A stretch of DNA of 64,000 nt from Penicillus capitatus. Lineage: Eukaryota; Plantae; Chlorophyta. The stretch covers positions 2,159,288-2,223,287 of the forward strand of contig OZ287695.1 of the NCBI GenBank assembly GCA_965649825.1, read 5' to 3'. The position numbers and the translations under genes were made by a program. The notes beneath the pieces are model-generated. The model ran no database searches. It worked only from the letters and a program-made list of their open reading frames with translations, and had not been told where the DNA came from. Positions 9,823-50,929 of the stretch are shown in pieces; the stretch's first letter is position 1; each line of letters opens with the position of its first letter.

Positions 9823-10710
9823 ATGAAAATGTCGCAATGTCCATTCGCTACGGGCGAAAGTATCCGTCTGGCCTGCCGCAGCGGAGAATTTACGGAGAGC
9901 ACGGCTGGACATGCTCCTGGTTATGAACAGGCGAACTTGACTGTCTTGCCCAAAGAACTTGCGGATTCCTTCGTCGTTTACTGCGAGAGGTCATGCTTAC
10001 ACTGGGGATACGGATAGGAGACAGAGAGCGTCTGGTGTGTAGGAATCCACAACCATGTCCTCTTCTTTATGCGACCAATCCGGGAGATCCTTCACCAGCA
10101 GGGTTGGCAAGGGACAGTGATGTCCGGTCAGATCTTCCGAGATATCTGGTGCGCAATGGCGATGAGACATTAGAAACGAAGGAGATCACGAAGTGGTGGA
10201 ATCATGATTCCGTCGCCTTGTTTCTTGGATGTTCTTTTGGCTTCGAGGTCGCACCCGCAATGACTTCTGCCTCTCTAAGCCATGTGGTATCAGGATGCAT
10301 TGAAGGCGGAAGGGATTCCGATGCGTCATATAGAGAAAGGAGTGACGGTGCCGATGTACATCACCGATCGTCTAACAGTGCCATCTGGACCTTTCCATGG
10401 ACCTCTTGTCGTTTCTATGCGTCCAATAGACGCTTCTCTCGTGCAGAAGACAATCGACATCACTCGGCAGTATCCTAGGGCACATGGAGCTCCTGTTCAC
10501 TGGGGAGACCCCTCTGTTCTTGGGATCAAGGATTTAAGTCGACCAGATTTTGGAGACAGTGTTGTTGTGCTCGAAAACGAAGAGCCTGTGTTTTGGGCTT
10601 GCGGTGTAACGGCCCAGATGGCTTTGCAGAATGCTGGAGTAGAACAGTGGATCAGCCATGTTCCTGGCTGTATGTTCGTTACAGATCTGCCATCCAAAGC
10701 CGCTTCATAA
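9823..10710 (+). CDS. DUF1445 / D-glutamate cyclase-family putative hydro-lyase (YcsI-like), 3 exons
   Basis: Motifs TAGHAPGYEQANL, CERNPQPCPLL, DVRSDLPRY, LFLGCSFGFE, VPMYIT, GPLVVSMRP, AHGAPVHWGDPSVLGIKDLSRPDFGD, PVFWACGVT and SHVPGCMFVTD. Confidence 0.92.
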
Positions 10711-15722: not shown

Positions 15723-17061
15723 ATGCTACGCAACAGTGCCGCTCGAGCTGCACCACTGCTTTGCATATTCAGGCAAACTCGACGAGATTTCAAAGTAAAC
15801 CGCCATGCGGCTGAAGGAGAGCGCGATAGACTGTTAGGCTGCTCTGCCACGCGCCAAGGATTCAGGCGAAGAACTGACGCCGACGTCTTTGGCTCGAAGC
15901 ATCGCTGAGGAGACAAAACAGTTTGCACGAAAGGCTGAACATCTACAGAGACTCCCCTTTCGTCGCTATGTCCATCGCCGAATGGTAAATGACGCGGAAG
16001 ATCTTTGCGAGTTCTTGGTGGCACGGTTGGCAAATCAGTCTGAGATCACCACAGCTCCAGTCGTGGGTGCCATTGCTCACAGTCTCTCACTCATCCAGGC
16101 AGACATCCATCCATCCAAGTCCCATAGATAATTCTCACACTTTGTTTGGCTCTTAAGGACACACTGTGGAATAGCAGACGGACCCCATACCACCATAAAG
16201 CCCTGGTGACCCATCTCTGGGAGAGGGCAGAAGCGAATGTCTCTGAAATGACAGCCACGGATGTGGGAAGCATGCTCTATGCTTTCTATGCGTTTCGCGA
16301 TGTCCTCTCAACGATTCATTCACCGTCTGAAAAGACAGGTGTTGATGGGACAGGTGCGAATGGAAAACAGGAGCATCATCTTCCGCTGGTTCAAAAATTG
16401 GTCGAGAGATTCCTTGCGGATATAGAAATGGGAACGAGCCAAGATGCCTTGTCGGTGCTCATGGGCATGGCCGTCGTTCCCTATACTCCACCAGACATCA
16501 CACAACGGCTCATCACGCATCACATCCTTCCACAGATTCCCATCGCCGACCACGAGATCCTCAGTCACATCGCCTGGGCCACAGGTCATGTCAAACCACC
16601 CAACGTCGCCAAAGTACGAGATCGTGTGTGGGGAGGATAACACCGATGGAGAATTCTTAATTCAGGTCATGGACCCTCTCGTCAAGCGATTTGTGGGTCT
16701 CCGTAGAGAAGAGTATGCATTGATGCCCGTCGAGACGTTTGCCAATCTCTTGAGTGGCCTGGCCATGGTGCATCATCCTCAGGGCCGGCCTCTCGCCTCT
16801 CTTCTCATTCGGTTCATCGATCGAGCAGGATCGATTGAATGGAGACCGAGAACGATCGTTCGTTTGGCGTACGGCGTTTCGCGATTCGATGCACACACAC
16901 CATTTTTTGTCGGAAAAATTTTGCGAGAAACGATTAGAAGTGGCAGATTCTTTTCTCTGCCAGAAGTCCAACAATTTAAAGAGACCATCGACGAAATGAA
17001 TGTCGAACCGGCAGACCAAATCTGGGAAAGTCTGGCACAGGCACATCCCTTTGCTGTTTAA
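15723..17061 (+). CDS. Organelle-targeted helical-repeat protein (OPR/HPR/FAST-like), likely RNA-binding
   Basis: N-terminus [24 protein letters not shown] resembles a mitochondrial presequence. Degenerate repeats include [50 protein letters not shown] and [16 protein letters not shown] introns join ORFs 15889, 16146 and 16444. Confidence 0.6.
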
Positions 17062-17838
17062 TCGCTTTTCACGACCTTCCCTTCGAAAGAGGCGTTGGTT
17101 GCCATAATGATCCCCACAATCACACCGAACAGACCCAGAGCACTGCCAAAGATCTCAATGACCAAGATCTTGACAAAGAGTGTCGCATTCTGTGCATCGG
17201 AGAGCGCTGCACTGCTGCCCACGATGCCAACGCACAAACTAACAACCAACAACGTCATCATCCAACATCTGTCACATCAGGGATCAAGGGACGTACCCGC
17301 AGACCAAATTGGCGAATCCTGTTGTGACGCCTGCGGCAAAGTAGGCATAGCCAGCATACATGTTCTTCTGGGAGTATTTTCCATCGTCTGTCTCGGGGCC
17401 GACCTCTTCGATTTTGGTGCTCAGAATAATGGCGACAATTACACCATAGATAGCCACCGCCTCGCAGAAAATAACACTGATCAGATTTTTGGAAGTGATA
17501 CGGGGCGTTCGAATGGCTGCGCCTAGAAGACTGGATCCCGTGATAAAGATACCCCTATCCAACCAAACCTCACCACTAGGCACGACGTATCGCGAATAGA
17601 GCCCTTACCAGGCGGCTCCAAGAATAGACAGGCCAACAGCCACGGCGATCCCAGTATAGGTCCAGTAGTACGGCGAGACATAGCGAAAAAGCAAGCCGCC
17701 GTACTCCCAGTCGATAAACTTGTCATCATCTCCAATTTTCGTGAGAAACACAAAGAAGGCGATGCATGTGGAGGAGAGGATAGAGAGTCCCAAGGTGGGA
17801 CCCGTCAGCAAGTTGTCGCTCTTGGCCTCGGATGACAT
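17058..17838 (-). CDS. VHA-c'': V-type H+-ATPase V0 proteolipid subunit c'' (Vma16/ATP6V0B), 3 exons
   Basis: [52 protein letters not shown] and [25 protein letters not shown], with an extra N-terminal TM helix. Confidence 0.96.
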
Positions 17839-17898
17839 GACGATAGCGAAGACGATGCGAACGGCGCAGAGACAAAAGGGACAACCTCATACGTCACA

Positions 17899-20198
17899 TC
17901 ACAGTTTGGCCCCTTGACGTCGACGGCGCACTTCCAAGTGGATGAGCAGTGTTGTAATGTCAGCAGGATTAACGCCGCCAATCATGGACGCCTGGCCAAT
18001 GGTTTTGGGCCGAATGCGCTGTAAATGCTCGCGCGCTTCTAAGGAGAGCTTATGGATCGAAGGGTAATCGATATCATGAGGAATCTCCAGTTGACCTCTG
18101 GCTCTGACATATTCAACCTGACGCTCCTGTCGACGAATGAACCCCTCATACTTGATCCCAATCTCAACACTCTCTTCCTCCATTTTGGTCAGGGACTGAA
18201 AGGGGCAGTCGTCAAAAAACGGCATCAGAGAATGGGCGCACATGATCTGGCGGGATAAGGTTGTGCGTGTGGAGGATGTCGTAGTGAACATGTGGTCGCT
18301 TCAATAGATCTCTGAGCGTTAGATGCGATCCAATATTGTGCCCATTACGACGGATTGCATCGACACAGACAGGATCCGATGGATCACAACGAATCTGGCC
18401 CAGACGCTCTGTCTCCTTCTCCATACGCGCCTATACACACATCCGTTGTGTGCATGAGTCATTGACGTTATCCTCCTCCTTTACCTGTTTCTCTTCAAAG
18501 TGCTGCCATTGGTGGTCTGAGACGAGGCCGATGTCGCGGCCAATGGGAGTGAGTCTTTGATCAGCGTTGTCTGCTCGCAGCAGCAGTCGATATTCTGATC
18601 GGCTCGTGAGCATGCGATAGGGCTCCCTCAGATCTTTGGTCGCCAGATCGTCGATCAGCGTTCCGATGTAACTGGATTCTCTGGAAAGAGTGAGAAGCTG
18701 TTGATTGTGGACATAACGAGCGGCATTGATCCCCGATATCAGACCTTGAGCCGCCGCCTCTTCATAACCGGTGGTTCCATTGATCTGTCCACTGAAGAAG
18801 AGTCCGCCGAATTTCTTCGTCTGCAGTGTCCCTTCACACTGATATGCAGGAAGGTAGTCATACTCCACTGCATAGGCAGGACGCAGCATCTTGACCTAGA
18901 GAACACAGGACAGTGCCCGTCTTTCATCATGCGTCCTCACCTCTTCGAGACCTGTCAAGGACTGGAGCATGGCTCGTTGCATGGATTCCGGCAGTCCTGT
19001 GGAGAAACCCTGCACATAGAGCTCTGGATTCATGCGACTCTCGGGCTCCAGGAAAATCTAGGACATGTCTCGCATCTCTGCTCCCGTGCAGATGTCTTTT
19101 CATCCCACCTGATGGCTCTGTTTGTCACTGAATCGCACAATCTTGTCTTCGATCGATGGACAATACCGTGGGCCCTTTGAATCGATCCAACCGCCGTACA
19201 TTGGACTCTTGTCCAGATTATCGCGAATGAGTTGATGAGTGATGGCATTCGTGCGTGTCAGGTAACAGCAGAGCTGTTCGCGTGGAACATGGACACTCGA
19301 ATCGTAGCTGAACCAACGCTCATCCTCATCCCCTAACTCAACATCCACACAGTGGACACAGACAAGAGGGAGAGTACCTGGTTGAGGTTCGAGCTTCGCA
19401 AAATCGACGGTGCGGGCATCGACACGTGCCGGTGTGCCAGTTTTGAGCCGATCGGTTTCGAATCCCAATTCCCTCAGCTGGTCCGAGAGTCCATGAGATG
19501 GAGACTCTCCAGCCCGCCCAGCAGGCAGCGATTTCTGTCCCACCCAGATGATACCATCCATAAACGTTCCGGTCGTCAAAACGACGCTCCGACTTGAGAA
19601 CGTCATCCCAAAGAACGTCCGGACACCACGGATCACATCGTTGGCATCGAAGAGAAGTTCTGTCACCATACCTTCTCGGATATCCAAATTCTGTTGCTGC
19701 TCTAGGACGCGTTTCATGAGATGTGAGTATTCGATCTTGTCGGTCTGAGCACGGAGAGCCCAGACGGCCGGTCCCTTGGAACGGTTGAGGACGCGTTTGT
19801 GTAAGTAACATCGATCGGCCATCTTGCCCATCTCTCCTCCCAACGCATCGACCTCGAAGACCAGCTGACTTTTGGCAGGACCACCGATGGCAGGGTTGCA
19901 TGGCTAGGAGCTGAGTTGGCAGAGAACTGGGACAGCTAGAGGAGGATCACACCTGCCAGGCAATTTTGTCGAGTGTGAGTGTCAGAAGCAGTGTCTGGCA
20001 TCCAAGACGCGCCGAAGCGAGAGCTGCTTCACATCCAGCATGTCCAGCACCGACGACCACGACATCATAAGCGTGCTGGTCTCTTTCACACGCTCTGGTA
20101 GCGACTGGGCGTTTCGACAGACGTCTTCTTTTTGGCAGCCCTCGAGAAGCGACCGATCTCAGCGGTGTCCATAGGGATCTGCTAGACAGCGTCAGCAT
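17899..20198 (-). CDS. mnmG: tRNA uridine-5-carboxymethylaminomethyl modification enzyme MnmG/GidA, organelle-targeted, multi-exon
   Basis: [106 protein letters not shown] and [22 protein letters not shown]. Confidence 0.97.
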
Positions 20199-20500
20199 TG
20201 TACGACATAAAGAGAGGGGATATGATCATCATGACGAGATTAATGGACTGATGCGATGCTGTCGCGATCGAGACGCATGTTGCGTACCTCGGTGATCGAA
20301 TCGTTCTCGGATCGTTCGTTTTGGACGCGACGAGTCGAGTCGTTACGTTGCTCCCTTCCTTCACAGATTTGATCCATCCGACACCTCTTCCAAGAAGAGA
20401 AACACATTTTGCGCCGCAAACAGAGATCCATCAGGTGGGGATCACATCTCGACTGGCCAAATGCCGAGGGTGGTGGACGGAACGCACGAACACGACGGCA

Positions 20501-22273
20501 ATGCTTTGTGCCGTCCAGGACGAGATGGCCGACGTTGGAACCACGAATGGCGTCGACGACGGCACCAGCGAAACGATGAAGAAATCGCAATCTACGCCGC
20601 CTCGTGGTCGAGTCGTCTCTTAATACCGATCCCCGATTGGTAACGTGCGTTTAGGACTGGAATGCGATGCGTCGTCTGAGGCGTCTGAAAAATATGCGCC
20701 GTTCTATGGGGATGTCTATGGTCCTGCCTTCTTCGGACCGCTAATCAGCTTCAACAGCTTTCATGGAATGCCTTTTGCATCCGACAATCCAGATGCCGTT
20801 TCCGCCATGGCATCGCCTCTTCTGTCCGCGCGACGCGGTTTCTATCAAGCTGTCCCGACGGAAGAGACATCCCTTCGAGGAAGAGAGCGACGCAAACAGC
20901 AGACGCGGCAGGATGTCGCTGCCGATGCTTCGCGTCCTTTTCATTACATGTCAGCTGTCTGCGGTGCGGCATTCCCCGGTGCAGAAGTGGATCTCTTTAC
21001 CAATCCCTTTCAACGTCCTGTCGATCGCACACCAACGGCCTGCACTTCTGCGACGGCAGCGCCAGGGAGCTATGGTGACGCAATGCTGCATTCGGACGTT
21101 TCCGAATTGCTCCAGCAGTTGCTCTCCGAAGATTTCTACCCTGCCACTGCCGAAACACTCGAATCTGAAAAGCGCGGTGCGGAGGATGGAGTGGAGAGCA
21201 GAGCCAGAGCTGTCACATCACATACGCGGCAGAGACTGGAGCGAAAGATTTCGGGAAGAACAGTGAACAGACAGCGCGAGACGCGCCTAACGCATTCGGA
21301 CGACATGAAGGACTGTATCGCCGTTCTCGCACCGCAGATGAAACGAAAACGCGTAACGCGAGAAGGCGCTTATAAGCGAAAGAAAAACAACACCGTGCAC
21401 GAAGGGCGTTCTTCGCGATTTCGCGGCGTCACGAAACATCGACGCAGCGGTCGTTGGGAGGCACACATCTGGATCAAAGAGATGGGCAGACAGGTCTATC
21501 TAGGAGGCTACGAGAAAGAGGAACACGCTGCCGAGGCCTATGACGTCGCTGCGATCAAGAGCAAAGGCGACAAAGTGAAAACGAACTTCGACATTTCGAA
21601 GTACACGGATCTACGTACGGTTATGGACTCCATTACGATGGACGAGCTGGTCATGATCGTCCGACGACAAAGTCAAGGGTTCTCCCGTGGGACATCGGTA
21701 TTCCGTGGCGTGACACATCATCCGAGTGGCCGTTGGGAAGCACGAATAGGCATACCAGGTGAGCTTGTCCTCACAGAGACGTCTTAACGCATGATCGTCT
21801 CAGGAAGCAAACATATCTACCTGGGTCTGTATAATGATGAGTTCGAGGCGGCGAAGTGGTATGATCGAGCGCTGGTGCGGTTGCGAGGATCGTCCGCCGC
21901 GACGAACTTCTTGCTGTCGAATTATCAAGAGGAGCTGTCTGAATATCACGAAGTGCAGCAAGCCATCATGCAACGTCCCCTTTCGCCGTGCCGCCCGTGC
22001 GAGACCGAGATGTTCTGTGTAGTAGGGGACACGTACGGCCTCGAGGAGCCCAAAATGTCGGGACCGTTTGAAAACTGGGTAAAGTATGGACGCAAAGGCG
22101 GCGCCGCTTCGATAAAGACCTGTCCGTCGGATGTGCATGAGAGAGGGGCCGAAGCCGACACAGAGAAGCTGCAAGAGAAAAAGCACCTCGTCTCGCAACT
22201 CATCATGCGTGCCTTGACAGAAAGCCACGAGACATGTGATGTGACATCTCAGCCATCTGACCCATCCCAATGA
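20501..22273 (+). CDS. Double AP2-domain transcription factor (AP2/ANT/WRINKLED1-like)
   Basis: SSRFRGVTKHRRSGRWEAHIW..RQVYLGGYEKEEHAAEAYDVAAIK, linker RRQSQGFSRGTSVFRGVT, and a second domain ARIGIPG|SKHIYLGLYNDEFEAAKWYDRAL split by an intron. The first exon from ATG 20501 is inferred (phase-1 splice to GACTGGAA at ~20651). Confidence 0.9.
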
Positions 22274-22484
22274 CCTCGCCTCTCTCACTTTTCTCAAATC
22301 CGAGACGCCGTTTGCGTCCGGAGCACAGATGGCGACGAAAACGGACTGTCTCTGATCGTATGTATGTATGTGTTTGAATACGGTTGTCTGTCAAAGAAAG
22401 GCACGTAAATGCTGATGTGACGTGAGGTGACGAATGTCTCTGATATCGCACGACGGTCGACGCTACCTCTCTGTTTCGTTCGAC

Positions 22485-25400
22485 ATGTCAGACGCAGCAC
22501 GTACGTTTCACTACGCCGAAGTAATCGCCACGATCTCCTTCTACCGCAGCCCGACGCCTCCCATGCATCATTTAGGAGTATCCCATCGCAGCTTTAGAAG
22601 ATGACTGCAAATTGCTTGCGTCGTTGTTGGACGACTGTCTGCGCATGGAAATAGGCAAAGAGCAATTCCACGATGTGAATGCGGCGCCGTCACCGTCATA
22701 CCATCTGACGCATATCTTTCTAGGTGGAGCTCTTGCGTGGCTTAGCTTCGTCGACTTCGATGCTTGTTCAAAAGAATGACCTTGTTTGGCACATACCTCA
22801 AAAAGAGTGATTCTATTCGTGGCTTTGTTGCAGGAGAGTGCTCAGTTTCTGTCTGCAAAACTGATTCAGTTGATTCGTTCGATGCCTTTGGAGCGATCTC
22901 TTCCCGTGGCCCGTGCTTGTGGACATTACCTCAATCTCACCGGCATTGCTGAAATGCACCACCGGTAGGACACACATCTCAGTCAATCTCACTCTTTTAT
23001 CTAAGCAAGCGAGGGCGTGATGCAATAGTGCTCGTCAGGTCCGTACCTCTGGCTTAGGAAAGCAGTCCTTCGATCATGTCTTTGCACATCTTCTCTCTCA
23101 AGGCATCACTCCAAAGCAACTCTACGAAGCTGTCTGCCAACATGTGCACAGAAGAACACTTCCGCAGCGTTCTGTCTTTACATGTTCTATTCTTTAGAAT
23201 GTGGAAATGGTATTGACAGCGCATCCGACACAGATTGTCCGTCGTAGTCTTCAATACAAGCTGGCCAAGATTGCGGTTCTTCTGGAAGAGAATGACAGGT
23301 GAAATGCCATGCGTTCTGCAGATTCTGAACGGGTTTCGAGTTCAGGTCGGATTTGACAGTGAAGAGGAAAGAGTCTGTGTTGGAGGATCTGGTGCGAGAA
23401 GTGACGGCACTGTGGCAAACACAGGAATTCAGAGCAAAGCCGCCGACACCCATCGATGGTCACACTTTTTTCAGGTCATATCATCCATCTCATTCTTTTT
23501 TCAGAGGCGCGGGGTGGATTGCACATCGTGGAGCAATCTCTATGGAATGCAATTCCTTCTTATGTCCGAACTTTGGATGCCAGTCTCAAAAAGGCAACAG
23601 GTGTGACATACACTTTTTCTGAGAGGAGTCGTTACGAAAAGTGTGATGTGGATTAGGCAGGGAACTGCCAGTCGATGCGCAGGTTGTGAGTTTTGGATCG
23701 TGGATGGGCGGCGATCGTGAAGCGCATCCAGCTGTCACGGCTGAAGTGACGCGACGTGTGGCTTACATTTCCCGCTGGATCGCAGCCGATCTCTACGTGA
23801 GAGAAATCGATGCGTTGCGTTTCGAAGTACAGAGATCGAACATCCAGATCTCCTCTGAGCCTATCTAACACATGCCTCTTACAGTTGTCGATGAATCGTT
23901 GCAATGACGTGGTGTGGAAGATGGTGCGCAAAATTGCAGAGGAGAGTCACATAGATATCCACGATGTCGGATGGGCAGATGGTCACGATTTGGCCAATTA
24001 TTCATCCGAAGAAACGCACGGCCGTACGTTCTTCCCCGAAGGTCCGCTGCAAAATCGCATCATAGACGATGAGAAGAAGTGTGATGCCCTAGTGAGGCGC
24101 ACGTCTTCGGAGCATATTACACTTCCGTGCGAAATGCCTATTCTGCTTGGACTAGAAAACAGACCTCATCCATCCGAGCCAGCCACGGACCCACGATCTG
24201 TCGTCTCTGTGGATCATGGAAGTCATGACAGCTCTTCGGTGTTGATCAGTGTAATGCGTGTTGTTCTCGATGGTGTGATACCTAAGACGTGGTCTACAGG
24301 ATGCCTCGTCATCATCCGGATCCCCAGAACAGGATGTGTCGCCTCTTGGCAGTGCTAAGAAACAAGTGTCCAGAAAAGCCGCCGCCAAAACGGAGAATCT
24401 GCACAAAATTGATGACATGCTTAGTCCGATTCAAACATCTTCCTTGCATGAAGGCTCTCATCCGTATCGCCTGGTCTTGGGCGATGTCCGTCGCAGACTC
24501 ATCGAGACGAAGTGTCGCATGAAAGCATTGCTGGCAGGCAGTCACATCGATATCGAGAATCCAGACATGTCAGCACAGGAGCTCCGAGACACACTCCTGG
24601 CCATCTACACGTCTCTCAAGCAGAGTGGAGCTGGAGTGATTGCCGATGGTCCATTGCTGGATGTCATCCGTCGTGTGAACTGCTTTGGACTGTGCCTGAT
24701 GAAAATGGATATTCGTCAAGAAGCTGAGACGCATGTCGAGGCAATGAATGAAATCACAAAGTACCTCAAAATGGGATCGTACGATGCATGGACGGAAGAA
24801 GAGCGCCTCCGTTTCCTGGTAGCCCTCTCTCCTGCTTTTCGAATCTGATCTTTCTGATCCCTTGTCGGATTTTAGACGGCAGAGCTCGAAGGCAATCGTC
24901 CACTCATCCTTGAAGAGATGCTGGAATCGGCGACGTCTAAAGAACTGCTGGAGACGTTTCTGGTGGCGGCTGAGTTAGGTAGTAATGTATTAGATGCCTG
25001 CCATACCAATTATTGATGTGGTTATGCACGTATCTAGGTCCATCTTACTTGGGAGCTTACGTCATTAGTAAACCGAAGGCCCCGAGCGACATCCTTTTGG
25101 TGGAGCTCTTTCAGAGAGAGGCAGCGTTTATTGTTGCACGCCGACAAGGAAATGCCCCAAAGCTGCACCATCTCATTCCTGTGGTGCCTATGTTCGAAAC
25201 ACTGGAAGGCCTTAAAGAAGCTTCTGTCATGATGCGACATCTCTTCAAGAATGTCTGGTATCGTCAGCACATCAGGTACCTGTCGCTTTCGTCTTGGAGG
25301 ATGGCGACAAGACAGTTGTGTCTAGAACGATGCACGGGGATACGCAGCAGATCGTGTTAGGTTACAGTGACAGTGGCAGGGATGCTTGTCGGCTGAGTGT

Positions 25401-26486
25401 GACCTGGGCGCTGTACAAATGTCAGGAGGAGCTTGTGGCGCTGTACAAAGAGCAGGATGTTGCATTGACAGTGTTGTATGGAAGAGGAGGCTGTATGGGC
25501 CGTGGAGGCGGTGATCCATTGTGGCTTGCTGTCCAATCTCAACCACCCGGTGCGCTGAATGGTCGTCTCAGGATGATCGAACAGGTCAGAAAGAACACAC
25601 GAGAGATATGCGCATGAATTCGTGCTGGTTCAGGGCGAGATGGTGCAGGCCAAGTTCGGTGTGCCCACTGTGGCCGAGGAGCAGTTGGAAACGTGTGCCA
25701 GTGCCTTGCTAATGGCAACCTTGTCGCCAGCCAAGACGTCCAAAAACGAAGGCTGGGTGAATTTGATGGAATCGATGAGTGTCGATTCTCGTTCAGCATA
25801 TCTAGCCGTGATTGAACATCCTAAATTTGAAGACTACTTTCTTCACGTGACTCCAGAATTGGAGCTCTCAACCATGATCACACGAATGGATCAACATGAT
25901 CAACCCCGTTGCGAAACAAACATCGAAATCAACAAGCAAGCACCGTGCCTTATGTGATGTGACTAGGAAGCAGGTATGGCGTAGGACAATTCCTTGGATT
26001 TTTTCATGGACGCAGACGCGCCATGTCTTTCCCTCCTGGCTTGGATTCGGCAATGCCTTGCAGAATGCCATTGAAGGAGGGAATCTGTTGGTTCTTCGAG
26101 ATATGTACAACGAATGGCCCCTTTTTCATTCCATGGTCGATTTGATCGAAATGATCCTTGCGAAAGTGGATACCAGAATCGCTGCCGTCTACGACGCAGC
26201 TTTCGTGACAGATCCAGAGGAAGAGGCCATCGGCCATGCGATCTGTCAAAGCTATAAGACAACAACAGAGGCTGTGCTCAGAGTCACGGGACATGCCCGT
26301 CTCTGCGATCATAATCCACTGCTGAGACACCTCCTGTCTCTCAGAAGCCCATTTCTGGACCCCATCAATATTTTGCAGGTCCAGATTCTCAAGGAGCTCC
26401 GATCGAAGCCAAAAGATAAATCGTTAAAGGATGCTTTGACGATCACCATTAATGGCATTGCTGCTGGAATGCGTAACACAGGATAG
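22485..26486 (+). CDS. PPC: Bacterial-type phosphoenolpyruvate carboxylase (BTPC), strongly divergent at several catalytic motifs
   Basis: N-terminus [87 protein letters not shown], and the C-terminal GMRNTG signature of the bacterial type. Many introns. Confidence 0.93.
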
Positions 26487-26518
26487 ACATTGTCGTTCAT
26501 CTGTCCAAGATGGATGTC

Positions 26519-28437
26519 CTACGTGTTGACGCTCTGTGAGGGCAGCAGAGGTTTTAATCCAGCCATGACATCTGATTTTGTTTGGACGGCTGAGTTCTGA
26601 ATTAGCTTCTCGATCAGCTGCGCGATTTCGCGATCGCTCGCTTGTGGATGCCACTCTCTGTCCACAATGCGTCGCGCCTGTCCCATCTTCAAAGATGCTT
26701 CGAATCCACTCTGGTATGCCAAGAAGAGTCGGCTGACCCAGTCCTGTGTACCCGGACTCCCGTCTCGATGCAGGATGTGCAACATCAGGTTCAATCCCAG
26801 TCGAACCGTCGGCTGCAATGCACGTGTCCGTTCGATGTCCCGATCCGTTTCGAGCGGCCAAACGCGAGGCAGGATGCTGAAGAGCTTGGAGTCTCTCACG
26901 AGTTCCAGTGCCTTGGTGATGAGATCTCTGTTGTCCAGCATCGCGACAGGATCTTCGAAGGCACTCCGTGGCATGGTGTTCGGAACGGGAGATGTGACTT
27001 TCGAGAGAAACACCAGCTGAGCATTGACCAGTGCAAGATCCATGTCCATCGGAACAGCACTTGTGCACAGTCGCTCGATCCGATAAGGAAGCATGATCTG
27101 CATCGACTCCACAAATGCCTCGGATTTGAGTCGAAACGACATGTTCGAGCGAAACTCGCTGTGCAGTGACATGAGATCGAAGAGGATCACTTGGATCTCA
27201 CGGGGTTCATCTGTGACGCTCAGATGATTGCTGAGAATCGATGTCGTCGTTGTGCCGTGCAGGAGGATCTCGTTGCTGACAGTGGATCTGAAATTCGACG
27301 ATTCTGGCAGATGCAGAACGAGGAGCAGCACGCCACGCAGGACACCAAAGACATGCATCCTCAAGATCTCATCCATTCTGTGATCGAGAAGTGTGACCAA
27401 CTTGAGTGACTGCCGAACGACATCCATATTACGAAGCATCTCTGCATAACATGTGTCACGGAGACAGGCATACAGGAAGGAAAAGAGCACCTTCGATAAA
27501 GAACGATGAGGCCTGCACTTCTTCCTTGAGTTTCTCGAAGATCGTGCGAATCATGAAACAGAGAGCGCTGTTTGTGGTTTCGCATTCTTGAAGATGAAAG
27601 GAGTTAGCCGCCATCTGCACAAACACACAGTCCGATCTCATCCTCTACATCTCCTCGCAGCGAATACAGTGTTTACCTGAAGGGCGATGCTGGCCAGTCC
27701 ATGGAAAACACCCAGTGCGTGGCGGCAGCTTGAGTGGAATAGAGCACTGTGCTGCACGATTGAATGCTTGATAAAGAGTGCCATGGCCATTGCCAGCCGT
27801 TGGACTTCGTGGATCTCGGCTTCCGTTTCGAAGCCTGATTGCATGGCCGATTGAAGTCGCTCCAGATCGTGCAGCATAGCAGAGGCGGCATTCTCTGGAA
27901 AGAAACTGGAAAAGATCTGCAGCAAAACGTTTCGCTGCGGATCCGAACGGCCATCGATGTTCCCGAGACAGCGAGAGAGAACACTATAGACATTGGCTCG
28001 GTAGGACCAGTAAGAGACGCCCTGTGTGTGCTGCTCGACATCATATGTCACATCATTGGCCGTAATGGCTGCTCGAAAGAGACTCTGACACAGTTGGCCG
28101 CCTTCTTCGATGACCCGATTCAACTCCTGAGCAAAATGCCCGTGATGTGACAGCTGGTGGAGTGTCTGCAAGGCATCGCGATACACGCCAGGCTGCGTCA
28201 TCGCAAAGCGCGAAATCGACAGCGTGTTTACGATCCCGTCCAGCAAATCGCCTTCGCGACGCGCATCCTGACGAGGGAAGCCCAAGAGATCAGAGGCAAA
28301 CTGGGGCGCCGAACTTGCGAGGACGTCGTTTACAAATCGCAGCACGGCCTGAGCAGGCGTCCCTTCACCTACAATCGATCTTCGTACGTTATTTGGGCAT
28401 TGCTCTGTCGTCGCTTACGACGTGAAGTGCGTCGCAT
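26519..28437 (-). CDS. Alpha-helical protein of ~580 aa resembling the middle/C-terminal part of nucleoporin Nup205 (truncated paralog)
   Basis: Exons at ~28437-28419, 28360-27697, 27635-27494 and 27447-26519 with GT-AG joins. Segments SDLLGFP..LLDGIVNTL..YRDALQTLHQLS, FRLKSEAFVESM, LVNAQLVFLSKV and LQPTVRLGLNL recall Nup205 blocks in the right order; recalled, not searched. Confidence 0.55.
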
Positions 28438-31340: not shown

Positions 31341-34300
31341 CTAAAGGACCCGATCTTTGTGCTTCTTGAGTTCTGCAATTTGAAGCAAGCCTGGGTACAT
31401 CTGCTCCAAAACGCCATGTATTTTTGACAGCAGTTGCTTGATGTCTTCGTTTGACTGCTCACAGACTGTGCGGCTAGTTTTGTTGCCATGGAGAAACAAT
31501 GTTCTTTTTCTCGTCCATCTCCGCTCAGCAGATATCGTCATTGCCGTGCGCATCGATCGCAGAGCAATTTCTCTCAAAACGCAATCACTCTGACGACTCC
31601 AGAACACATTCGTGAGCATTGTTAGATCCGCGGTTCGAAGAGCACGACGTAGACGATCATCCGTTTCTGGAGATACAATTATGTGTGCTATGATATCTTC
31701 CATGCTTTCTGGCACGGTAGATTCAGCATCGTTGCCTTGTTCTATGACTTCTGAAGGTATGTCGCCAGTCAGAATTCGACGCTCACGTTCAAGAAGCTCC
31801 AATTGAGATTCCATTTTGTTTGCGTCTTTGCCTATGATTGTCCTTAAGCGTGGTGCTGCCACTTGCCGCACGACTCGGATTTCACCTCTACAGCCATTTT
31901 CCAATATCCTTGTTAAATCTTCCACCAGTTCGCCTGAAGAAGCAACGAGGACTCGTGCCGTGTTTTCCATTGCACGTGCTCCGGCTTCATCCGCATGCAT
32001 TGCTTGCTTTTTCAAAGTTTCAGCGACCCACTCTCTGTATCCCGGAATACGTGCAATGATTTGAATGAGATACTGAAAAGACGCATCGAATAGAAGAGTG
32101 TCATGCCCTTCTGTTTTTGTTATCGAGGCAACCAGGTCTGGGAAGGCATCAAGCACGTTGGAGATTTTTCCAAGCTGACTCGACAACACTTCTCTCATGT
32201 CTGCATTCTTGTAATGATTTGCGATCAATGATCGGAGAGACTCCAGCAGACTATTGACGATCTCGTTCTCTTTCAAGGCATCGATCAAAGACGGATCCAA
32301 AGACGACAACACAGCATTCAGCACTTGCAATTTTGTGAACAGATGCTGTATCCCAGTAACATCCAACACAGGAGCTCTGTCGATATGCTCAATCAATGCA
32401 GGGAATTGATGGTAGTCTCTGTCCTGAAAGAACTCTTCCGTCATGAAGCGAATTGCATTCCTCTGTCGCTGAAGGTATTTGCCTTCTGTCAAGAACTCTT
32501 TAACTCGGTTGTATCTCCCGCTGTCCGCTCCTGGATTTTTGAATGCTTTTGCCAGATAACGACCAGCAAAGAACTCTTGAAAGACTGGATGCAGGAAGCG
32601 ATAGTCCTTGCTTCCCATTTGTTTTACCAGGAATCCGCAATTCGCCAAGATCCATTCCTCCATCGACTTCGATGCTTTATCAATATCCTTCTTCTGGACA
32701 AGACTGTTGCCATCTTTGAGTGTCGCGAAAGCAATTTCTGACAGAACGTCGAATATCCCAGGTGGTGGTTTGCTGCGGAGTTTTTCGCTGGATTCTGCAA
32801 AATGTTTCCACATATGGCGCGCCACCATGTCATACAGATTCCACAAACTCTTTGTCAATTCGTTCTTTCTTGGCACCTGCTTTGGATCTTTCCATAGGAG
32901 GCAAAGAATATTCGCAATCACTGGAACATGTGCTGGCTCCCAAAGAGAAGGATTGGGGTACAACAACTTGACTAAACGAGGCCCATCGTTACCGATTTCT
33001 GAGTAGATAAATCGGAGAAACTGCAAATCATTGAATCCAGGGCACTCCACTGTGAGATCGACTTGATGTTGCACTTCATGCAAATTGCAGGGGCGACTAG
33101 TCAGCAGCAATTTACAACTGCGTCTGAATGCTGATGACAGCAAATGTTTGGCAAGGGTATTTCTTTCCTCTAATCCATCAAAAATGAGGAGAGTCTTTGG
33201 AGATTCCAGAGTGTCTTGAATCTGTGTCAGCAGGGGATTTGAATGCGAGTCTTCACTGTTGAACATCAATTTTGCGATCACCCTTTCCAGATTTCTGGTA
33301 CCCCAGTATTCGGATGGGTTGAAGATCTCTCCACCCGTCAATTTCTTTATAGAGATAATGTAAACGGTTTCGAATTCACGCCAACGGTTGCCGTGTGCCC
33401 ACTGGCAGGCAATGGTCTTAGTGAGGCACGTCTTTCCAGCTCCCGGGATTCCAATCAACAGCACACTTTTGACTTCACTTGGCTCTGCGTCAGGATCCAG
33501 TACTCGGTCCCGAAAGAGATCTCCCAAACGAACAGACTCTCCCGTTGGATACTGCGTTAGGTGATTGAATGTCGTGTGATGTTCATCGGTATCTTCTGCA
33601 TTGGTGTCATGAACGACATTCGCCTCTCCATCAGCAGCTCTTTTGGGGATCATAGTGCTGTACTCCATTTTCTTGACCCTCCTCTTCTGTTCATGCCGAG
33701 CATGAGAGAAAGCGACCTTTATGCAGAATAAAGATGTGTTTCATAGAGTAGTGCTCACTGCAGGATGTTCACCTCGGAAAAACTCTTGTCTTTGTACCTT
33801 GACTTCAATCCCTCGATGTTGTCATCCATATCCTGCACTGTCAGAACAAGTCCTACCTTCTTTCCCACCTCGCGAAAAAGGCAATCTCCAGTATCATCAG
33901 ATTGCTGTTGATGAGAGCTCAGTTTTTCTTCCAACGTTTTGCCGTCCAACCATTTATCAATCTGTTTCGTTCTGGGATCTTCGTCTGTCATTTCATTGAA
34001 AAGACTTTGCAGTTTCTCGCCGATCCGCTTTCGATGCTCTTCAAGTCGACAAGACGTATGGACTGCCTCTAGAAAGATCTCAAATATGTCCGAATCCTTA
34101 ATTATAGCCTCCTTGGACATGTCCAACAACTTAGTGACCGAATCTTCACGGACCTCTACTGTCTCAGATTCGTGAGCAAGGTGACTCAAAACTCCGATGT
34201 GACCAAACTGAAAGGCTTTTCGGTCTTCTTCATTCTGGCATCCTTCGAGGAACTTGATGGCAATGACATAGCCAGCTTGATAGTACGACAAGTCAATGTC

Positions 34301-35257
34301 CTCCTCAAGAGCTTTTGAGGTGTAGTTGACAAGTCTTTGCGTAGGCCAATACCATGCTTCTTCTTGGATGGTCTCAGGATCATCAGCACTGTTCACTCTC
34401 CTGACTCTACGTGCGGACGCCGCTGTGTCAGTTTCGATATCTAGTGCTCTGCGAAATCCCTGGAAACAGTAAAAGGGACCGAGAACGACGTCTCCCACGA
34501 TGGTACACCAGGTTTTTTTCCTTGGAAAGAACCTCATGTTGTTTATACGTCGAATGTCTTGTTCGACGATCTTCATGTAGTACCAAGATCGGTAACAGTT
34601 ATCGGAATTCTTGATCTCCTCACATTTCTCCCGTAAGATAATTCCATTGTGGAACTTCGTCGGATCGACCTCCTCGGACCTACAGGACGAGTAGAGGAGT
34701 TCCAGCGTCGAGTGGAGTGTGTGAAAGATGTCTCCATTCCACTGAAATTCTTTGTTCGTTATTCTCAGCTCGGCTGGGATACATTGGATGAGCTTGTGTG
34801 CCAAGTCGTGAAGCTCGAACGGCGCCTCCTCAAGGATATAATGAGCGACGTTGTTCTGAGCTTGGCCGATGGCCTTTGCATAAGCATTGGTGTTCGCGTT
34901 TTGCGCATCCTCTGGGGAAAGGATCGCCGCGAACGTGCTGAGAACTTTCTGGTGAAAAATTTGACATTCCCGTTGTGCCGTATATGGGATCTTCGTTCTT
35001 GACAGTTCTGCATACTCACGAACGACGTCTGGTGCCACTCCTTGTCCCGCCTTTCCGGCAAGGACTTCGTGATAGCGGTCGAGCCATCGACGGAATAGAG
35101 CCTTCTCTTTGGCGTCCGTCGTCGTGTTATGCGCTTCGACGAGTGCTCTCGTGCTGTGAATGCCTTTGGATTTTGCAAGTCGGCGAACGGTTTTTTCTTC
35201 GCTCTCTTTGACGTCCGAACTAGCGCTCTTTGGGAGTGTTCTTTCTTGTGCCGCCAT
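31341..35257 (-). CDS. NLR-like STAND NTPase: ~500-aa N-terminal helical domain, NACHT domain, degenerate HEAT/helical C-terminus (~1,290 aa, 2 coding exons)
   Basis: Exon 35257-33775 splices (GAG|gtgaac..ataaag|GTC) in frame to 33718-31341. Walker A is GIPGAGKT, Walker B is LLIFDGLEE, sensor is LLTSRP, and the winged-helix motif is YRFLHPVFQEFFAGRYLA. Confidence 0.92.
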
Positions 35258-36029
35258 ATTATTCACTGCACAAAACGATGAGATACGTCAGTTAGTTACG
35301 ACTTGATGAGGCGACATCGAGAGACGTAACACCGTCACGAGTGATTTCCCTTTATATTGAAAATGCCTCATCTCGACCGTATGACAGCAAGTAGGAGAGA
35401 GGACTATGTCTGGAGTATCTGAGTTCTGTGGGGTGCGCCTCAAGGCAGGAGCCATGAGTGCAAGATTCCACATTGTCGGCGTTACCTGCAGAATGACACC
35501 GGATTTGGCCTGCTGTCGCCAGAGGATGCTGACTAATAACGATTTGTTGGAGACTGCTGCAAGAGAGAGATTTTTGACAGTACACTGCCAGAGAGAGAAA
35601 GGAGAGGTGCATCCTGTGGCTTCTTCATTTATGCCCATCTCAATCCATCGCCTATTGAAGTTCTGCTTCTTTTTCGATTCTTCAATGTTCTGTTGGCTTC
35701 TCTCTTTCACCAACAGTTTGAAAAGAACAATGGACTGCCAGACCAGATCTCAAATGCATGGACAGGGCGAATAAGGTGCGGCAGAGATTTAGTGAAAGGT
35801 GTCTATCATCCAACCCCAATTTGAATGAATGATCCATATTCGCCGCTTAGCACTAGTTTCGCACCTCCGCCCCTGCCCTTTCCTTATTTACTCACTTAAA
35901 TGCCAGGATGGGTCTTATCAGGACTTGTCAATGTCATGTCATGTCGCGTCGTGGAATGGCCACAGAAACGATGTTTTCAATCGAACCATCGAGATAATCT
36001 GCCTCGCCGTGTTACAGCGTTTTCTCAGG

Positions 36030-37190
36030 ATGGCGAAACGTGCTCTGCTTGTGGGTTGTAATTACCCGGGAACAAAGGCTGAGTTACGTGGCTGTGTCAA
36101 TGATGTCTTTAATATGAAAGCACTCTATGAGGAGTGCTTTGATGTGCATGACTTTACCATCCTCGTCGACACTGACGAAAACTATCTCCAGCCAACAGGG
36201 CGTCAGATCAAAGACTCTTTGCGCGAACTCGTTGAGAAAACGAAGCCTGGGGATGTCCTCGTGATGCATTTTAGTGGACACGGTACTCAAGTTCCTTCGG
36301 ACGATCCGGATGAGGAAGACATGAAAGACGAGGCTCTCGTGCCAACAGATATGAACCTTCTTTTGGACGATGATTTACGTGATATCGTCAAGCAATTACC
36401 AGAAGATACATACTTCACCTTTGTGAGTGATTGCTGTCATAGCGGAGGACTTCTCGATCACCGAGAAATCCAAATTACTGGACCAAAAGACAAGAAAGCT
36501 GTTCCCCAGTTTGACACACCTTCTATCCTTTCCGTGTTCGGCCTCCGAGAGAAAGGAGCGCCTCCGGAAGGTGTCAAGAATCGTTCCTTGCCCGCAGATC
36601 AGCTCATGTCATTGCTTGGCGGGAAGGCAGGAGATGTAGTGGACAATAAGAACGTGCGAAAAGTACTGGACAGCCTGTTTGGCAAAGATGCTAGCAAGCG
36701 AATTCGAAAGTATGTTTCCGCAGTTCAGACAGTAGTGGGCGTAGCAACCAAATCAGCTGGGTGCATTTCTCGTTTCTTTTCTTATCTGGGGCTATTTCCG
36801 AAACCAGCTGCTACTGCCGCTGCTGAACCTAGCTCCACCGTTTCTTCTGCTCCACCCCTAGCAGCTTTGAAGCCAGGACACAAACCACCACCTGACAGCC
36901 AGTTGAACGAAGATGTCGGTGTATTGATCACTGGATGTCAATCACACGAGACAAGTGCAGATGCGTGTCCTGAAAACAATCCATCAAGCGCCTATGGTGC
37001 ATTGAGCCATTCTATACAGACGGTCGTACGTGCACATCGCAGAAAGACGAAGAAGGGGGAAATGTCCAACAAGGATCTCGTTTTTGCTGTACGCAGTCTT
37101 CTGGCCGAGGGATTCTATGGACAGAACCCATGCTTGGAATGCAGTCAACAAAATGCAGATCGTGCATTCATCACAGGCAACAAAATCTGA
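36030..37190 (+). CDS. Type II metacaspase, intronless, 386 aa, catalytic dyad intact
   Basis: MAKRALLVGCNYPGTKAELRGCVNDV, HFSGHGTQ (His), SDCCHSGGL (Cys), long linker with KNRSLP, and p10 GVLITGCQSHETSAD..AYGALS. Confidence 0.97.
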   Translation: MAKRALLVGCNYPGTKAELRGCVNDVFNMKALYEECFDVHDFTILVDTDENYLQPTGRQIKDSLRELVEKTKPGDVLVMHFSGHGTQVPSDDPDEEDMKDEALVPTDMNLLLDDDLRDIVKQLPEDTYFTFVSDCCHSGGLLDHREIQITGPKDKKAVPQFDTPSILSVFGLREKGAPPEGVKNRSLPADQLMSLLGGKAGDVVDNKNVRKVLDSLFGKDASKRIRKYVSAVQTVVGVATKSAGCISRFFSYLGLFPKPAATAAAEPSSTVSSAPPLAALKPGHKPPPDSQLNEDVGVLITGCQSHETSADACPENNPSSAYGALSHSIQTVVRAHRRKTKKGEMSNKDLVFAVRSLLAEGFYGQNPCLECSQQNADRAFITGNKI

Positions 37191-37362
37191 AGAAGAAAGC
37201 ATTTCAAAACAGGACAGTTTGTGGTCGTGCCAGAAAACGTTATGGCTTATTTTCCTTGATGCTGTCTGTTTGTCAACAATCGTCATTATATTTTAATGAA
37301 ATTATTGGTGCATGAGAGTATCGTGTTGACCTTCCAGCAACCCCCGTGCCTCTTATTTGAAG

Positions 37363-38658
37363 ATGACGTTTCTGACGCTTCAGGTAGGACAGTGTGGAAA
37401 CCAGTTGGGTCCAGCGCTGTTTGATATTCTGTCTTCCGAGTATAGCCACATCGATGGATCCTTCTACGATACCCTCCCATGGAATCCTTTCTTTCGAATG
37501 CCATCCAGAAAGAGAGGAGAGCAGCAGAACAGTGCCATTGCTCGAAGTCTGCTTATAGATATGGAACCCGGTGTGGTGCAACGAACATACTCTCAGGCAC
37601 AGAAAAGTGCTCGTGGATGGACATACAGTCGATGCAACTGCTATGTTCAGCAGAGTGGTTCCGGAAACAATTGGGCAATGGGTTATCACGAATACGGCCC
37701 GAAGATTAAGGAGGTCATTGTGGAAAGCATTCGGAAGGAACAGGAGATCAGCGATGTTTTCAGCGGCTTCCTTGTCCTGCAGAGCGTGGCTGGTGGAACT
37801 GGATCTGGATTGGGTGCTTATTTGACGGCAGAGCTTGGAGATGCGTTTCCGAAATCCTTTCTTCTAAACTATTGCATTTGGCCATACCGACTAGGAGAGG
37901 TCATCGTGCAGAGTTACAATGCCGTCTTGACACTGGCGCATATCATGGATTCTTCTCACGGGATCTTTCTGGCAGAAAATGACACGCTGAGCGAGATATG
38001 CCAAACAATGCATTCCTCAAGACGACCGAGATTCGAAGAAATGAATGAGGTTGCTATGCACGGACTGTCAGGGGCGCTGCTGCCTTCTAAGATGAGACCC
38101 ATCCAAGGTCAGCATTCGGCGAAGCATTTTCCGGGCAGTTGGACACGAGTTGTTGCCGATATCTTGTCTGTGGTCTGTCCGCATTCACAGCAGAAATTGC
38201 TGAAGTGCCTCTCTGTCCCTCAAATCGGATCGACTTCGATGGATTATGCCTCCATCGACTGGAATGCTCAGATCAGACACATGTTGAAGCTTGTACAGCC
38301 GAAGAAGTTCGACAAGCGATGCTCACAGTCCTTTGCGCACTTTCTCACGCTGAGAGGACGGAAGAGTCTATGTCCAAGTGTCCAAGTCTTTGAGGAAGAA
38401 TCTCTGTACGTCTATGGTCGGACGCGACTAGGTGTCGCATACAGTCCAGTTCCCTTCCGCGGATTCGAGTCTTCCCTCTCACTCATCACGAATGGACAGG
38501 ACAGCATCCTTCCCGTCGTAGATGCCGCATCAAAAGCCAAGCAAATGTATCGATCGAAGGCGTTTTTGCATCCTTATCTCACATATGGTCTCGATCGTCC
38601 GTCCTTTGAGCAAGCTTTTCATTTCGTTGATGATCAGGTCATCTCTCACTATCGCTGA
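37363..38658 (+). CDS. TUBD1: Delta-tubulin (UNI3/TUBD1), intronless
   Basis: LQVGQCGNQLG, ARSLLIDMEPGVV, QQSGSGNNWAMG, QSVAGGTGSGLG and WPYRLGEVIVQSYNAVLTL, which are delta-type rather than alpha, beta or gamma signatures. Confidence 0.92.
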   Translation: MTFLTLQVGQCGNQLGPALFDILSSEYSHIDGSFYDTLPWNPFFRMPSRKRGEQQNSAIARSLLIDMEPGVVQRTYSQAQKSARGWTYSRCNCYVQQSGSGNNWAMGYHEYGPKIKEVIVESIRKEQEISDVFSGFLVLQSVAGGTGSGLGAYLTAELGDAFPKSFLLNYCIWPYRLGEVIVQSYNAVLTLAHIMDSSHGIFLAENDTLSEICQTMHSSRRPRFEEMNEVAMHGLSGALLPSKMRPIQGQHSAKHFPGSWTRVVADILSVVCPHSQQKLLKCLSVPQIGSTSMDYASIDWNAQIRHMLKLVQPKKFDKRCSQSFAHFLTLRGRKSLCPSVQVFEEESLYVYGRTRLGVAYSPVPFRGFESSLSLITNGQDSILPVVDAASKAKQMYRSKAFLHPYLTYGLDRPSFEQAFHFVDDQVISHYR

Positions 38659-49900: not shown

Positions 49901-50929
49901 CCTTATGCTCTGTTCTGTTTTCCTTCTCAAACATTGATTTTCTGTTCAGCGAGGAATTTTTATTGGATGCAGCAACAAAAGAGAATGAGTCGAAAGTTGA
50001 AGAAATGCAGTTGTTGCTAGAAGAGAGTGAAGCACGTGCTAAAACGGTGGAGGCTTCCCGTGACGAAGAGCTTGTGGAGTGCGCAGAAGAGATCCGTTCG
50101 CTGCAGGACACCATCGAGAAACTCCAGCAAGAAATGAAGGAGAGAGAGTCGGCTTTGCAACAGGACATTGCAGATGTTCGTGGTCGGAGAGAAAAAGAAA
50201 CGACAGAGTTAGAAGAGCAGCTGACAAATACTCGTGCTTTATACTCCACCTTGCAAGAAGATGCCGAACAAACGGAGCATAAATTGAAAGAGCTGTTGGA
50301 TCAGAAGGACTTCCAGGTGTTGTCTGCTGACATCTTTATTTAAAGGTGACGGGTTTTTGGCCTTTTAGTTAAGCGAGACACAGTCTAAGGCACGAGAGAT
50401 GATGAAAGAGAAGGATGAAGAAATTGAGATGCTGAAGCAGAATCAAATGCAGCGGCATCTTTCACCAGACGACATTTCTGAAGATGATCCATCAAAAGCA
50501 GTTGTCGAGAAACTGCAGTCCGACGTCCAGTTTTTGCGTCATCTAGTAAGCCTTGACTCTCTTCTATGCTTTGCTCATTGAATGCTGCAGGTCTTGGATT
50601 TGACATCCAGTCTCGAACAAAGCGAACGTACACACGAACTGCGAGATCAAGCAGATCAAGTGATCAAAGATGAACTGTGCTCTTATGAGCGATCCAAGAA
50701 AAGAGAGAGACTGGACTTGGATTACGTAAAGAACGTTCTTGTGAACGCCTTTGAAAAGGGAACACTGCCAAAGACGAGTCCAATGTTCATGGTCTTGGCA
50801 CGGCTGTTCGAATTCAGCCCTGAAGAAATGGAGAGAATAAGAAGAGCAGAGAAAACGCATACACCATCAAATTCATCGTCATCCTTCAAATCGACTGGAT
50901 CGATTTTCTCTGCATGGACACGCTCGTGA
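46905..50929 (+). CDS. Long coiled-coil golgin with a C-terminal GRIP-like domain
   Basis: A 999-aa E/Q/K/L-rich heptad ORF plus downstream exons, ending LDLDYVKNVLVNAF..VLARLFEFSPEEMERI (GRIP consensus). Confidence 0.88.

Follow-up and report, generated by a model that had tools for sequence, protein, structure and literature searches.

The genome assembly of the green alga Penicillus capitatus (GCA_965649825.1) carries on contig OZ287695.1 a gene related to bacterial-type phosphoenolpyruvate carboxylase (BTPC), which is the subject of the analysis described here. The window, i.e., the whole stretch of 64,000 nucleotides that was analysed (positions 2,159,288 to 2,223,287 of the forward strand), contains a single phosphoenolpyruvate (PEP) carboxylase (PEPC) locus. 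The BTPC-like gene occupies positions 22485-26486 (+) of the window and comprises 17 exons, with 1052 codons and a TAG stop, separated by 16 short introns of 46-64 nucleotides. Its splice model was built by hand from three-frame reading and GT-AG inspection, which gave 14 introns, and two hidden introns were added later. The spliced coding sequence (CDS) has no internal stops, and projection of the exons onto the sister locus L002 (see below) likewise yielded an in-frame, stop-free CDS. The N-terminal exons start with the ATG at 22485 and align with residues 6-296 of Escherichia coli PEPC, and the N-terminus is collinear with that of BSKO_03957 from Bryopsis sp. KO-2023. The Pfam PEPcase profile (PF00311) matched six collinear open reading frame (ORF) pieces in 23686-26486, covering profile positions 241-919 with E values from 1e-14 to 3e-59. 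An earlier sequence-only reading of the window had located the PEPC at 23700-26000 and had described its frame as otherwise preserved. A PEPC does lie there, but the gene begins upstream at 22485, and the frame is preserved only after removal of the introns at 24042-24092 and 25936-25984.

Relatives of the gene were found with the last-exon ORF as query against 1.84 billion representative proteins, among which P0121 (89%) and P0122 (72%) were close matches. Of the contigs that carry these two, locus L002 is a 265-kb contig from ENA (ERZ26696514) and L003 is a Logan contig; L007 and L008 came from a further search. L004, another haplotig of the L002 sample, differs from L002 by 22 single-nucleotide polymorphisms (SNPs) and no indels over 4.3 kb. 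Both are contigs of the one assembly ERZ26696514, at coverages of 157x (L002) and 162x (L004); with an SNP divergence of 0.5% and indels absent, the two copies of the locus probably stem from the two haplotypes of a diploid alga or else from two very closely related strains. The proteins P0123 (Cymbomonas) and P0395 (ENA ERZ26858540) were considered as the canonical PEPC of the same organism and rejected as fragments from other samples. The top database matches were all bacterial-type PEPCs, namely plant PPC4 and algal Ppc2/PEPC2, and the closest named relative was the Bryopsis BTPC (BSKO_03957), with ~50% identity at full coverage. In a maximum-likelihood tree, the pair formed by the window and L002, together with L003, forms the sister group of the Bryopsis BTPC within the chlorophyte BTPCs (SH-like approximate likelihood ratio test support of 100), and QNTG-type and bacterial PEPCs fall outside the BTPC group. 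The path from the shared node measures ~1.0-1.1 changes per site for the clade of the window compared with 0.37 for Bryopsis. The gene is intact and, as the sister of the Bryopsis BTPC, is a member of the chlorophyte BTPC (Ppc2/PPC4) lineage. No synteny with the Bryopsis locus was found.

The two introns added later are easily missed, and one of them mimics a frameshift. When the region is read without splicing, the frame switches between ELELSTM (frame 2) and TIPWIF (frame 0) within 25877-25985, and there is a TGA at 25955; the 49-nucleotide GC-AG intron at 25936-25984 explains both the apparent frameshift and the TGA. At the same codon position, L002 has a 49-nucleotide GC-AG intron, L003 has a 48-nucleotide GC-AG intron with a polypyrimidine tract, L008 has a 48-nucleotide GT-AG intron with an in-frame stop, and L007 lacks the intron precisely, reading ...ACA ATC AAG AGC ATC CCT TGG. 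Splicing out the segment in the window produces NIEINK/TIPWIF, in agreement with PETIK SIPWIF of L007. The splice also determines the residue at the position of R713 (E. coli numbering): the AGG at the boundary was read as Arg because the acceptor AG and the first exon base abut, whereas the spliced codon, AA/G, specifies Lys, the residue found after splicing in every member of the clade. The alignment of L002 with window positions 22300-26600 was complete, at 85% nucleotide identity, and showed no indel where the frame breaks; the break is therefore not an assembly error. The second intron, at 24042-24092, could be misread as coding, and the frame of L002 and L004 is kept only if a 49-nucleotide GT-AG segment homologous to it, with a 2-nucleotide indel inside, is removed.

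Other accounts of the apparent breaks were rejected. A 31-nucleotide GT-AG mini-intron at 25954-25984 is conserved in L002 but is ~4 standard deviations shorter than the other introns of the gene, and the 49-nucleotide GC-AG model replaced it because the junction INK/TIPW agrees with the intron-less L007 and with the GT-AG intron of L008. Ribosomal frameshifting (+1) at ATG-TGA-T was discarded, as the break in exon 10 of L002 (GTG-TGA-T) proved to lie within the 49-nucleotide GT-AG intron, and an assembly error in that exon was discarded on the basis of the identical sequence in the second haplotig, L004. A frameshift pseudogene at 25877-25985 was rejected given the same layout without indels in L002, a ratio of nonsynonymous to synonymous divergence (dN/dS) of ~0.13 in the flanks, and the relatives that resolve the intron. 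The 8-mer TGTGATGT, with an in-frame TGA, occurs at both apparent frame breaks (window 25949-25962 and L002 8110-8120), which is probably a coincidence, both breaks being intronic. As an observation in its own right, the intron site before the last exon illustrates, in a small set of close relatives, how a donor site changes and how an intron is lost or gained, with GC-AG introns in the window (25936-25984), L002 (9966-10014) and L003 (~10290-10340), a GT-AG intron in L008 (~3541-3588), and none in L007 (~250). The gene's poorly conserved linker and the neighbouring genes may contain further hidden in-frame introns.

The gene evolves under strong purifying selection. The whole-CDS Nei-Gojobori dN/dS between the window and L002 was 0.122 (bootstrap 0.094-0.152) at a dS of 0.43. 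Exons of the two loci are 88% identical and introns 76%, and all 16 splice-site pairs (GT/GC-AG) are conserved. Indels between the two that are not multiples of three lie in introns or outside exons, including one 2-nucleotide gap that was later placed in an intron. By region, dN/dS against L002 was 0.055 for the N-terminal third, 0.098 for residues 481-883, and 0.131 for the last exon; it was 0.13 for the loop that replaces the canonical GSRP segment (described below) and 0.29 for the linker. Across five species the last exon has neither indels nor stops, with dN at ~0.2 and dS saturated, so that pseudogene status is excluded for practically the whole period since the divergence of the species.

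Active-site residues were assigned by HMMER alignment to PDB entry 1FIY, from which the E. coli numbering is taken. The window protein retains H138, W248, R396, E506, D543, R581, R587, and K620. By motif, it also keeps what we take to be K773 (EMILAKVD), R832 (SLRSPF), and N881 (MRNTG), and presumably the E433/R438 interface pair (AELEGNRPL). The PEP phosphate reportedly binds to three arginines, R396, R699, and R713, and Kai and colleagues are said to have described these in 2003 together with a mobile GSRPxKRR loop; the equivalents of R396 and R713 are reportedly essential in the PEPC of Flaveria. R699, R703, and R704 sit on the mobile lid. In the window protein R396 is present, R699 and its loop are absent, and the R713 position is occupied by Lys; with R699 lost along with the loop and R713 replaced, the PEP site is not intact. 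One Glu and one Asp of PEPC coordinate Mg2+, and carboxyphosphate is deprotonated by a conserved His located on a flexible loop (PMC10176493). Both metal ligands, Glu506 and Asp543, are in place in the window. H138, H579, and R587 play important parts in catalysis (PMC11832675). The window protein has H138 and, in the Gly-rich loop, R581 and R587, but this loop is one residue longer, a state found in 0 of 182 other PEPCs. Changes also affect L504 and M538 of the hydrophobic pocket and include S603A and T611I. Replacement of the residue equivalent to K546 by Arg or Thr in plant PEPC raised the Km for HCO3- by up to 9-fold and affected Vmax little (PMC4085955).

The segment that stands where canonical PEPCs have their lid is a coding sequence in its own right. 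It is unrelated in sequence to NIGSRPxRR, is homologous in L003, L007, and L008, and against L002 shows a frame-2 coding signature in which most changes are synonymous. The sequence-only reading had listed GDREAHP, K546R, H579Y, GRGGGDP, YVISK, and the lost GSRPxKR loop as altered motifs, and the alignments to 1FIY and to BTPCs bear out every one of these. Its list of retained residues holds for H138, R396, E506, D543, R581, and R587 and, by motif, for K773, R832, and N881, but not for R713. The intact metal, PEP, and inhibitor sites that it described stand for E506/D543 and the inhibitor residues in the window, but not for the PEP site, and its proposal of altered bicarbonate handling is framed too narrowly, as the losses extend across catalysis.

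The motif changes are far beyond chance. Of the 336 columns with a conservation of at least 95% across 120 BTPCs, the window deviates at 66, compared with 2 for the median homologue and 18 for Bryopsis. Among full-length PEPCs (n = 193), 184 of 185 have His at position 579, 177 of 177 have Lys at position 546, 192 of 193 have GSRP, and 182 of 182 have a spacing of one residue from GRGG to Pro; as judged by motif-pattern matches, the state of the window at H579, K546, the GSRP loop, and the GRGG-to-Pro spacing occurs in none of the 193.

The altered motifs are common to a clade of at least five sequences. All of its members have D254E, the Lys of YVISK, D510G, G549C, H579Y, S603A, T611I, and R713K, as well as the extra residue in the Gly-rich loop and the loss of the loop bearing R699, K702, R703, and R704; changes in GDRDGNP other than D254E vary by lineage. 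Four clade members each deviate at 66-78 of the 336 near-invariant columns, 45 columns are deviant in all four, and in 26 of these the derived residue is identical. Beyond this common core, individual lineages differ. In L002 and L004 the metal ligand E506 is replaced by Lys (GAA to AAA), a change verified in the DNA of both haplotigs, and in L008 R396 is replaced by Cys (also verified in DNA) and S542 by Cys. The window and L002 both have Arg at K546 and Pro in place of Arg in both the DGRLLD and LRVVP motifs, and L003 has K546Y, S544L, R253K, and G588K; M538V occurs in the window only.

Published criteria for BTPCs are an (R/K)NTG end, the absence of an SIDAQLR motif, and a disordered insertion of ~10 kDa after the ELSM region (PMC5854131). 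The window protein has the C-terminal tetrapeptide, its last residues (26466-26483) ending in RNTG, and its N-terminus is without the acid-base-XX-SIDAQLR seryl phosphorylation motif. A linker of ~150 residues with a dN/dS of 0.29, compared with 0.06-0.10 in its flanks, is, by position, length, and faster evolution, a candidate equivalent of the disordered region. The complete catalytic residue set of described BTPCs is not present (H579Y, K546R, R713K, the lid loop, GDRDGNP, and the GRGG insertion). As read from these features, the protein is a divergent BTPC descendant and not a typical member. Chlamydomonas Ppc2, castor RcPPC4 and AtPPC4, and Bryopsis BSKO_03957 resemble it in the PEPcase domain, the RNTG end, the lack of SIDAQLR, the long, poorly conserved linker after ELSM, and the many-exon gene; unlike this clade, however, known BTPCs have the full set of residues important for catalysis and serve as both catalytic and regulatory subunits, and the clade branch is ~3 times longer than the Bryopsis branch. 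The structurally characterised E. coli PEPC (1FIY, 1JQN, and 1QB4) and plant-type PEPCs (PTPCs; 1JQO, 3ZGE, and 5FDN) are alignable along the catalytic regions with E ~1e-131, the alignment covering residues 17-314 and 481-881 of the spliced N-terminal query plus last exon. They share H138, R396, E506, D543, R581, R587, and the Asp/malate-site residues with the window protein but are ~40% identical to it or less; the window protein lacks R699, K702, R703, and R704, has Lys at R713 and Tyr at H579, has a changed L504 and M538 pocket, and carries the BTPC linker as an extra.

Weighing these results, we judge with moderate confidence, from sequence comparison, that the locus is a functional, selection-maintained gene derived from a BTPC whose protein would no longer be a competent PEP carboxylase, i.e., a pseudoenzyme. 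Features kept in the clade protein are the barrel scaffold, the E433/R438 pair, R587, K773, R832, and N881, the BTPC linker, and the RNTG end, and these fit a protein that may still fold, oligomerise, and bind effectors. A scaffold under constraint, combined with catalytic positions that were lost in common and then drifted independently, is the signature of a pseudoenzyme. Furthermore, E506K and R396C in the sister lineages, the L504 and M538 changes, and the lost PEP-phosphate ligands point to a loss of catalysis as such and not to a specific change in HCO3- use. The sequence-only reading had proposed a selected pseudo- or neo-enzyme as opposed to a decaying gene, and the results agree with it: dN/dS is 0.12 and not ~1, the splice sites are kept, the altered motifs are clade-wide, and the substitutions are absent from the 193 other PEPCs.

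Under the pseudoenzyme interpretation, carboxylation would have been lost in the ancestor of the clade, the catalytic positions would then have drifted, and the protein would have been retained for a non-catalytic function. Most plausibly, it would act as a regulatory or scaffold subunit, itself non-catalytic, in a Class-2-type hetero-oligomer with plant-type PEPC; alternatively, the protein may have become a metabolite-binding protein. Class-2 complexes, in which BTPC is associated with PTPC, are desensitised to malate (PMC5854131; PMC3010082), the binding of BTPC making the catalytic PTPC less sensitive. Because known BTPCs join PTPC in such complexes, a non-catalytic regulatory subunit would be the most economical role. 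Regulatory pseudoenzymes such as pseudokinases and iRhoms are alike in having a constrained scaffold, catalytic residues that were lost and then varied, and a ligand or regulatory site that was kept, although in the present case the regulatory role is one that we infer. A search for a PEPC pseudoenzyme in the literature, limited to open-access papers, returned none. A stronger proposition, which we hold to be about evenly balanced, is that the BTPC of this Bryopsis-related lineage is perhaps the first PEPC pseudoenzyme of natural origin, devoid of catalytic activity and preserved over tens of millions of years only as a partner that regulates or scaffolds, or as a metabolite sensor.

Several points weigh against the loss of catalysis. 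The copy in the window still has H138, R396, E506, D543, R581, and R587, and the apparent conservation of the interface and inhibitor sites concerns few residues. E. coli PEPC mutants at H579 retain partial activity, so that residual or altered catalysis is possible in the species of the window. The K-to-R change at the equivalent of K546 mainly raises the Km for HCO3-, with Vmax little changed (PMC4085955).

On the strength of such points, the protein could be a still active PEP carboxylase with unusual kinetics, namely a high Km for HCO3- or PEP or an altered effector sensitivity, in which Lys would substitute for R713 and the new loop would assume the role of the GSRPxKRR lid. K620 is retained along with the six residues just named, K546R alone is tolerated in plant PEPC, R713K is conservative, and strong purifying selection would be expected of an enzyme too. 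However, the R699 and R703/R704 lid is gone in every clade member, H579Y and the insertion in the Gly-rich loop are fixed, and these states occur in 0 of 193 other PEPCs; moreover, the closest sister has E506K and another member R396C under the same constraint, which is hard to square with selection for carboxylation. We regard an active carboxylase as unlikely.

A neo-enzyme, in which the barrel would have been adapted to a different reaction of PEP or of a related acid, such as bicarbonate-independent PEP hydrolysis (an option raised in the sequence-only reading) or a phosphatase reaction, is likewise doubtful. The 26 derived residues that are identical in four members, several of which lie in active-site motifs (Y579, C549, the Lys of YVISK, E254, I611, and A603), indicate new constraints and not mere decay, and E. 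coli PEPC mutants are known to hydrolyse PEP as a side reaction. Use of PEP, however, needs the metal ligands and phosphate-binding arginines, which are exactly what varies (E506K, R396C, and the loss of R699), and no new conserved catalytic-looking motif is evident. Both enzymatic alternatives are made less likely than the pseudoenzyme by sister lineages that are under the same constraint without E506 or R396. Lastly, a pseudogene, i.e., a BTPC copy in decay and frameshifted at the loop, is suggested by the naive reading, which changes frame in 25877-25985 and meets the TGA at 25955, and by the many replaced invariant residues, but it is highly improbable, as the apparent break is an intron of conserved position (four species have it in GC-AG or GT-AG form and a fifth lacks it precisely) whose removal leaves complete stop-free ORFs in the window and L002 with a dN/dS of 0.12, exons are more conserved than introns, all 16 splice-site pairs are kept, and, by a rough estimate, neutral drift altering 20% of invariant residues would have brought ~ten stops and many frameshifts.

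Table 1. Exons, introns, and motifs of the BTPC-like gene; positions are those of the window and residue numbers those of E. coli PEPC.
Feature	Position	Strand	Description	Basis
Exons 1-6	22485-22520, 22576-22674, 22724-22783, 22834-22964, 23029-23143, 23198-23298	+		Manual splice model
Exons 7-12	23346-23458, 23505-23600, 23657-23826, 23885-24041, 24093-24250, 24300-24818	+		Manual splice model
Exons 13-17	24876-24978, 25038-25275, 25326-25584, 25634-25935, 25985-26486	+		Manual splice model
TAHPT	23216-23230	+	H138 equivalent kept	Alignment to 1FIY
GDREAHP	23710-23730	+	Replaces invariant GDRDGNP: D254E, G255A, N256H, then N258A	Alignment
Linker	23909-24452	+	After ELSMNRCND; ~150 residues, poorly conserved, contains intron 24042-24092; no counterpart in E. 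coli or PTPC structures	
51-nucleotide GT-AG intron	24042-24092	+	In-frame and stop-free in window, misreadable as coding; L002/L004 counterpart 49 nucleotides	
MDIRQEA	24705-24725	+	R396 equivalent kept in window; Cys in L008	Alignment
YVISK region	25058-25090	+	YVISM to YVISK; invariant Met now Lys, common to whole clade	Alignment
Metal-ligand E506 region	25175-25213	+	E506 kept; L504M, D510G, conserved Arg of LRVVP lost	Alignment
D543 region	25345-25389	+	D543 kept; M538V, K546R, G549C	Alignment
VLYGRGG region	25471-25518	+	F578L/H579Y; R581 and R587 kept; Gly-rich catalytic loop with one extra residue between the second GRGG and Pro (GRGGGDP)	Alignment
Replacement loop	25871-25935	+	Stands where canonical PEPCs have LNIGSRPxKRR...L; R699, K702, R703, R704 gone	Alignment
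49-nucleotide GC-AG intron (GCAAGC...GCGTAG)	25936-25984	+	Phase 2, within Lys codon AA/G; position common to relatives	
Last exon	25985-26486	+	Starts (K)TIPWIF; K773, R832, N881 equivalents and bacterial-type RNTG end, then stop	

The surroundings of the gene were also inspected. Gene order is conserved between window 17050-22273 and L002 1100-6100, running from a V-ATPase proteolipid gene (ATP-synt_C) through a GidA/MnmG tRNA-modification gene (-) and an AP2 gene to the PEPC gene. The product of the GidA/MnmG gene has a transit-peptide-like N-terminus, and the AP2 gene, a two-domain plant-type AP2 transcription factor at 20645-22273 (+), lies just upstream of the PEPC gene; in L002, a Tic110-like gene is found further downstream of PEPC. 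At 31341-33668 (-) the window has a single-exon ORF of 775 residues with a NACHT/NB-ARC STAND NTPase domain (E 2e-13), beside which lies an ORF of 503 residues without a Pfam match (33755-35266, -), and a metacaspase (Peptidase_C14) is encoded at 35829-37190 on the strand opposite to the STAND NTPase ORF. To judge from these domains, this stretch could be an algal immune or cell-death neighbourhood. An intron-less delta-tubulin gene occupies 37357-38658 (+), and its relatives are found on the L002 contig (89%), in Logan assemblies (57%, 54%, and 48%), and in Bryopsis (38%), a spread of identities that indicates several unsequenced or undescribed species around the organism of the window. A coiled-coil-like ORF of 999 residues at 47021-50020 (+) and an ORF at 61364-62359 (+), rich in Pro and Ser and hydrophobic in a segment at its C-terminus, had no Pfam match.

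For annotation, the consequence is that an automatic pipeline would call this gene broken at either the in-frame intron or the GC-AG intron that mimics a frameshift. For the PEPC family, the catalytic and regulatory roles of BTPC in Class-2 PEPC complexes are hard to separate. If the pseudoenzyme interpretation is true, an active site that has been dismantled while the scaffold, the inhibitor-site residues, and the linker were kept would mean that a non-catalytic role alone can sustain the gene. The clade would then represent a natural separation-of-function BTPC and would provide ready-made sequences for probing the regulatory role. PEP carboxykinase-based carboxylation has been reported for some siphonous or Bryopsis-related algae, and the clade described here bears on carbon metabolism in these same siphonous or Bryopsis-related algae.

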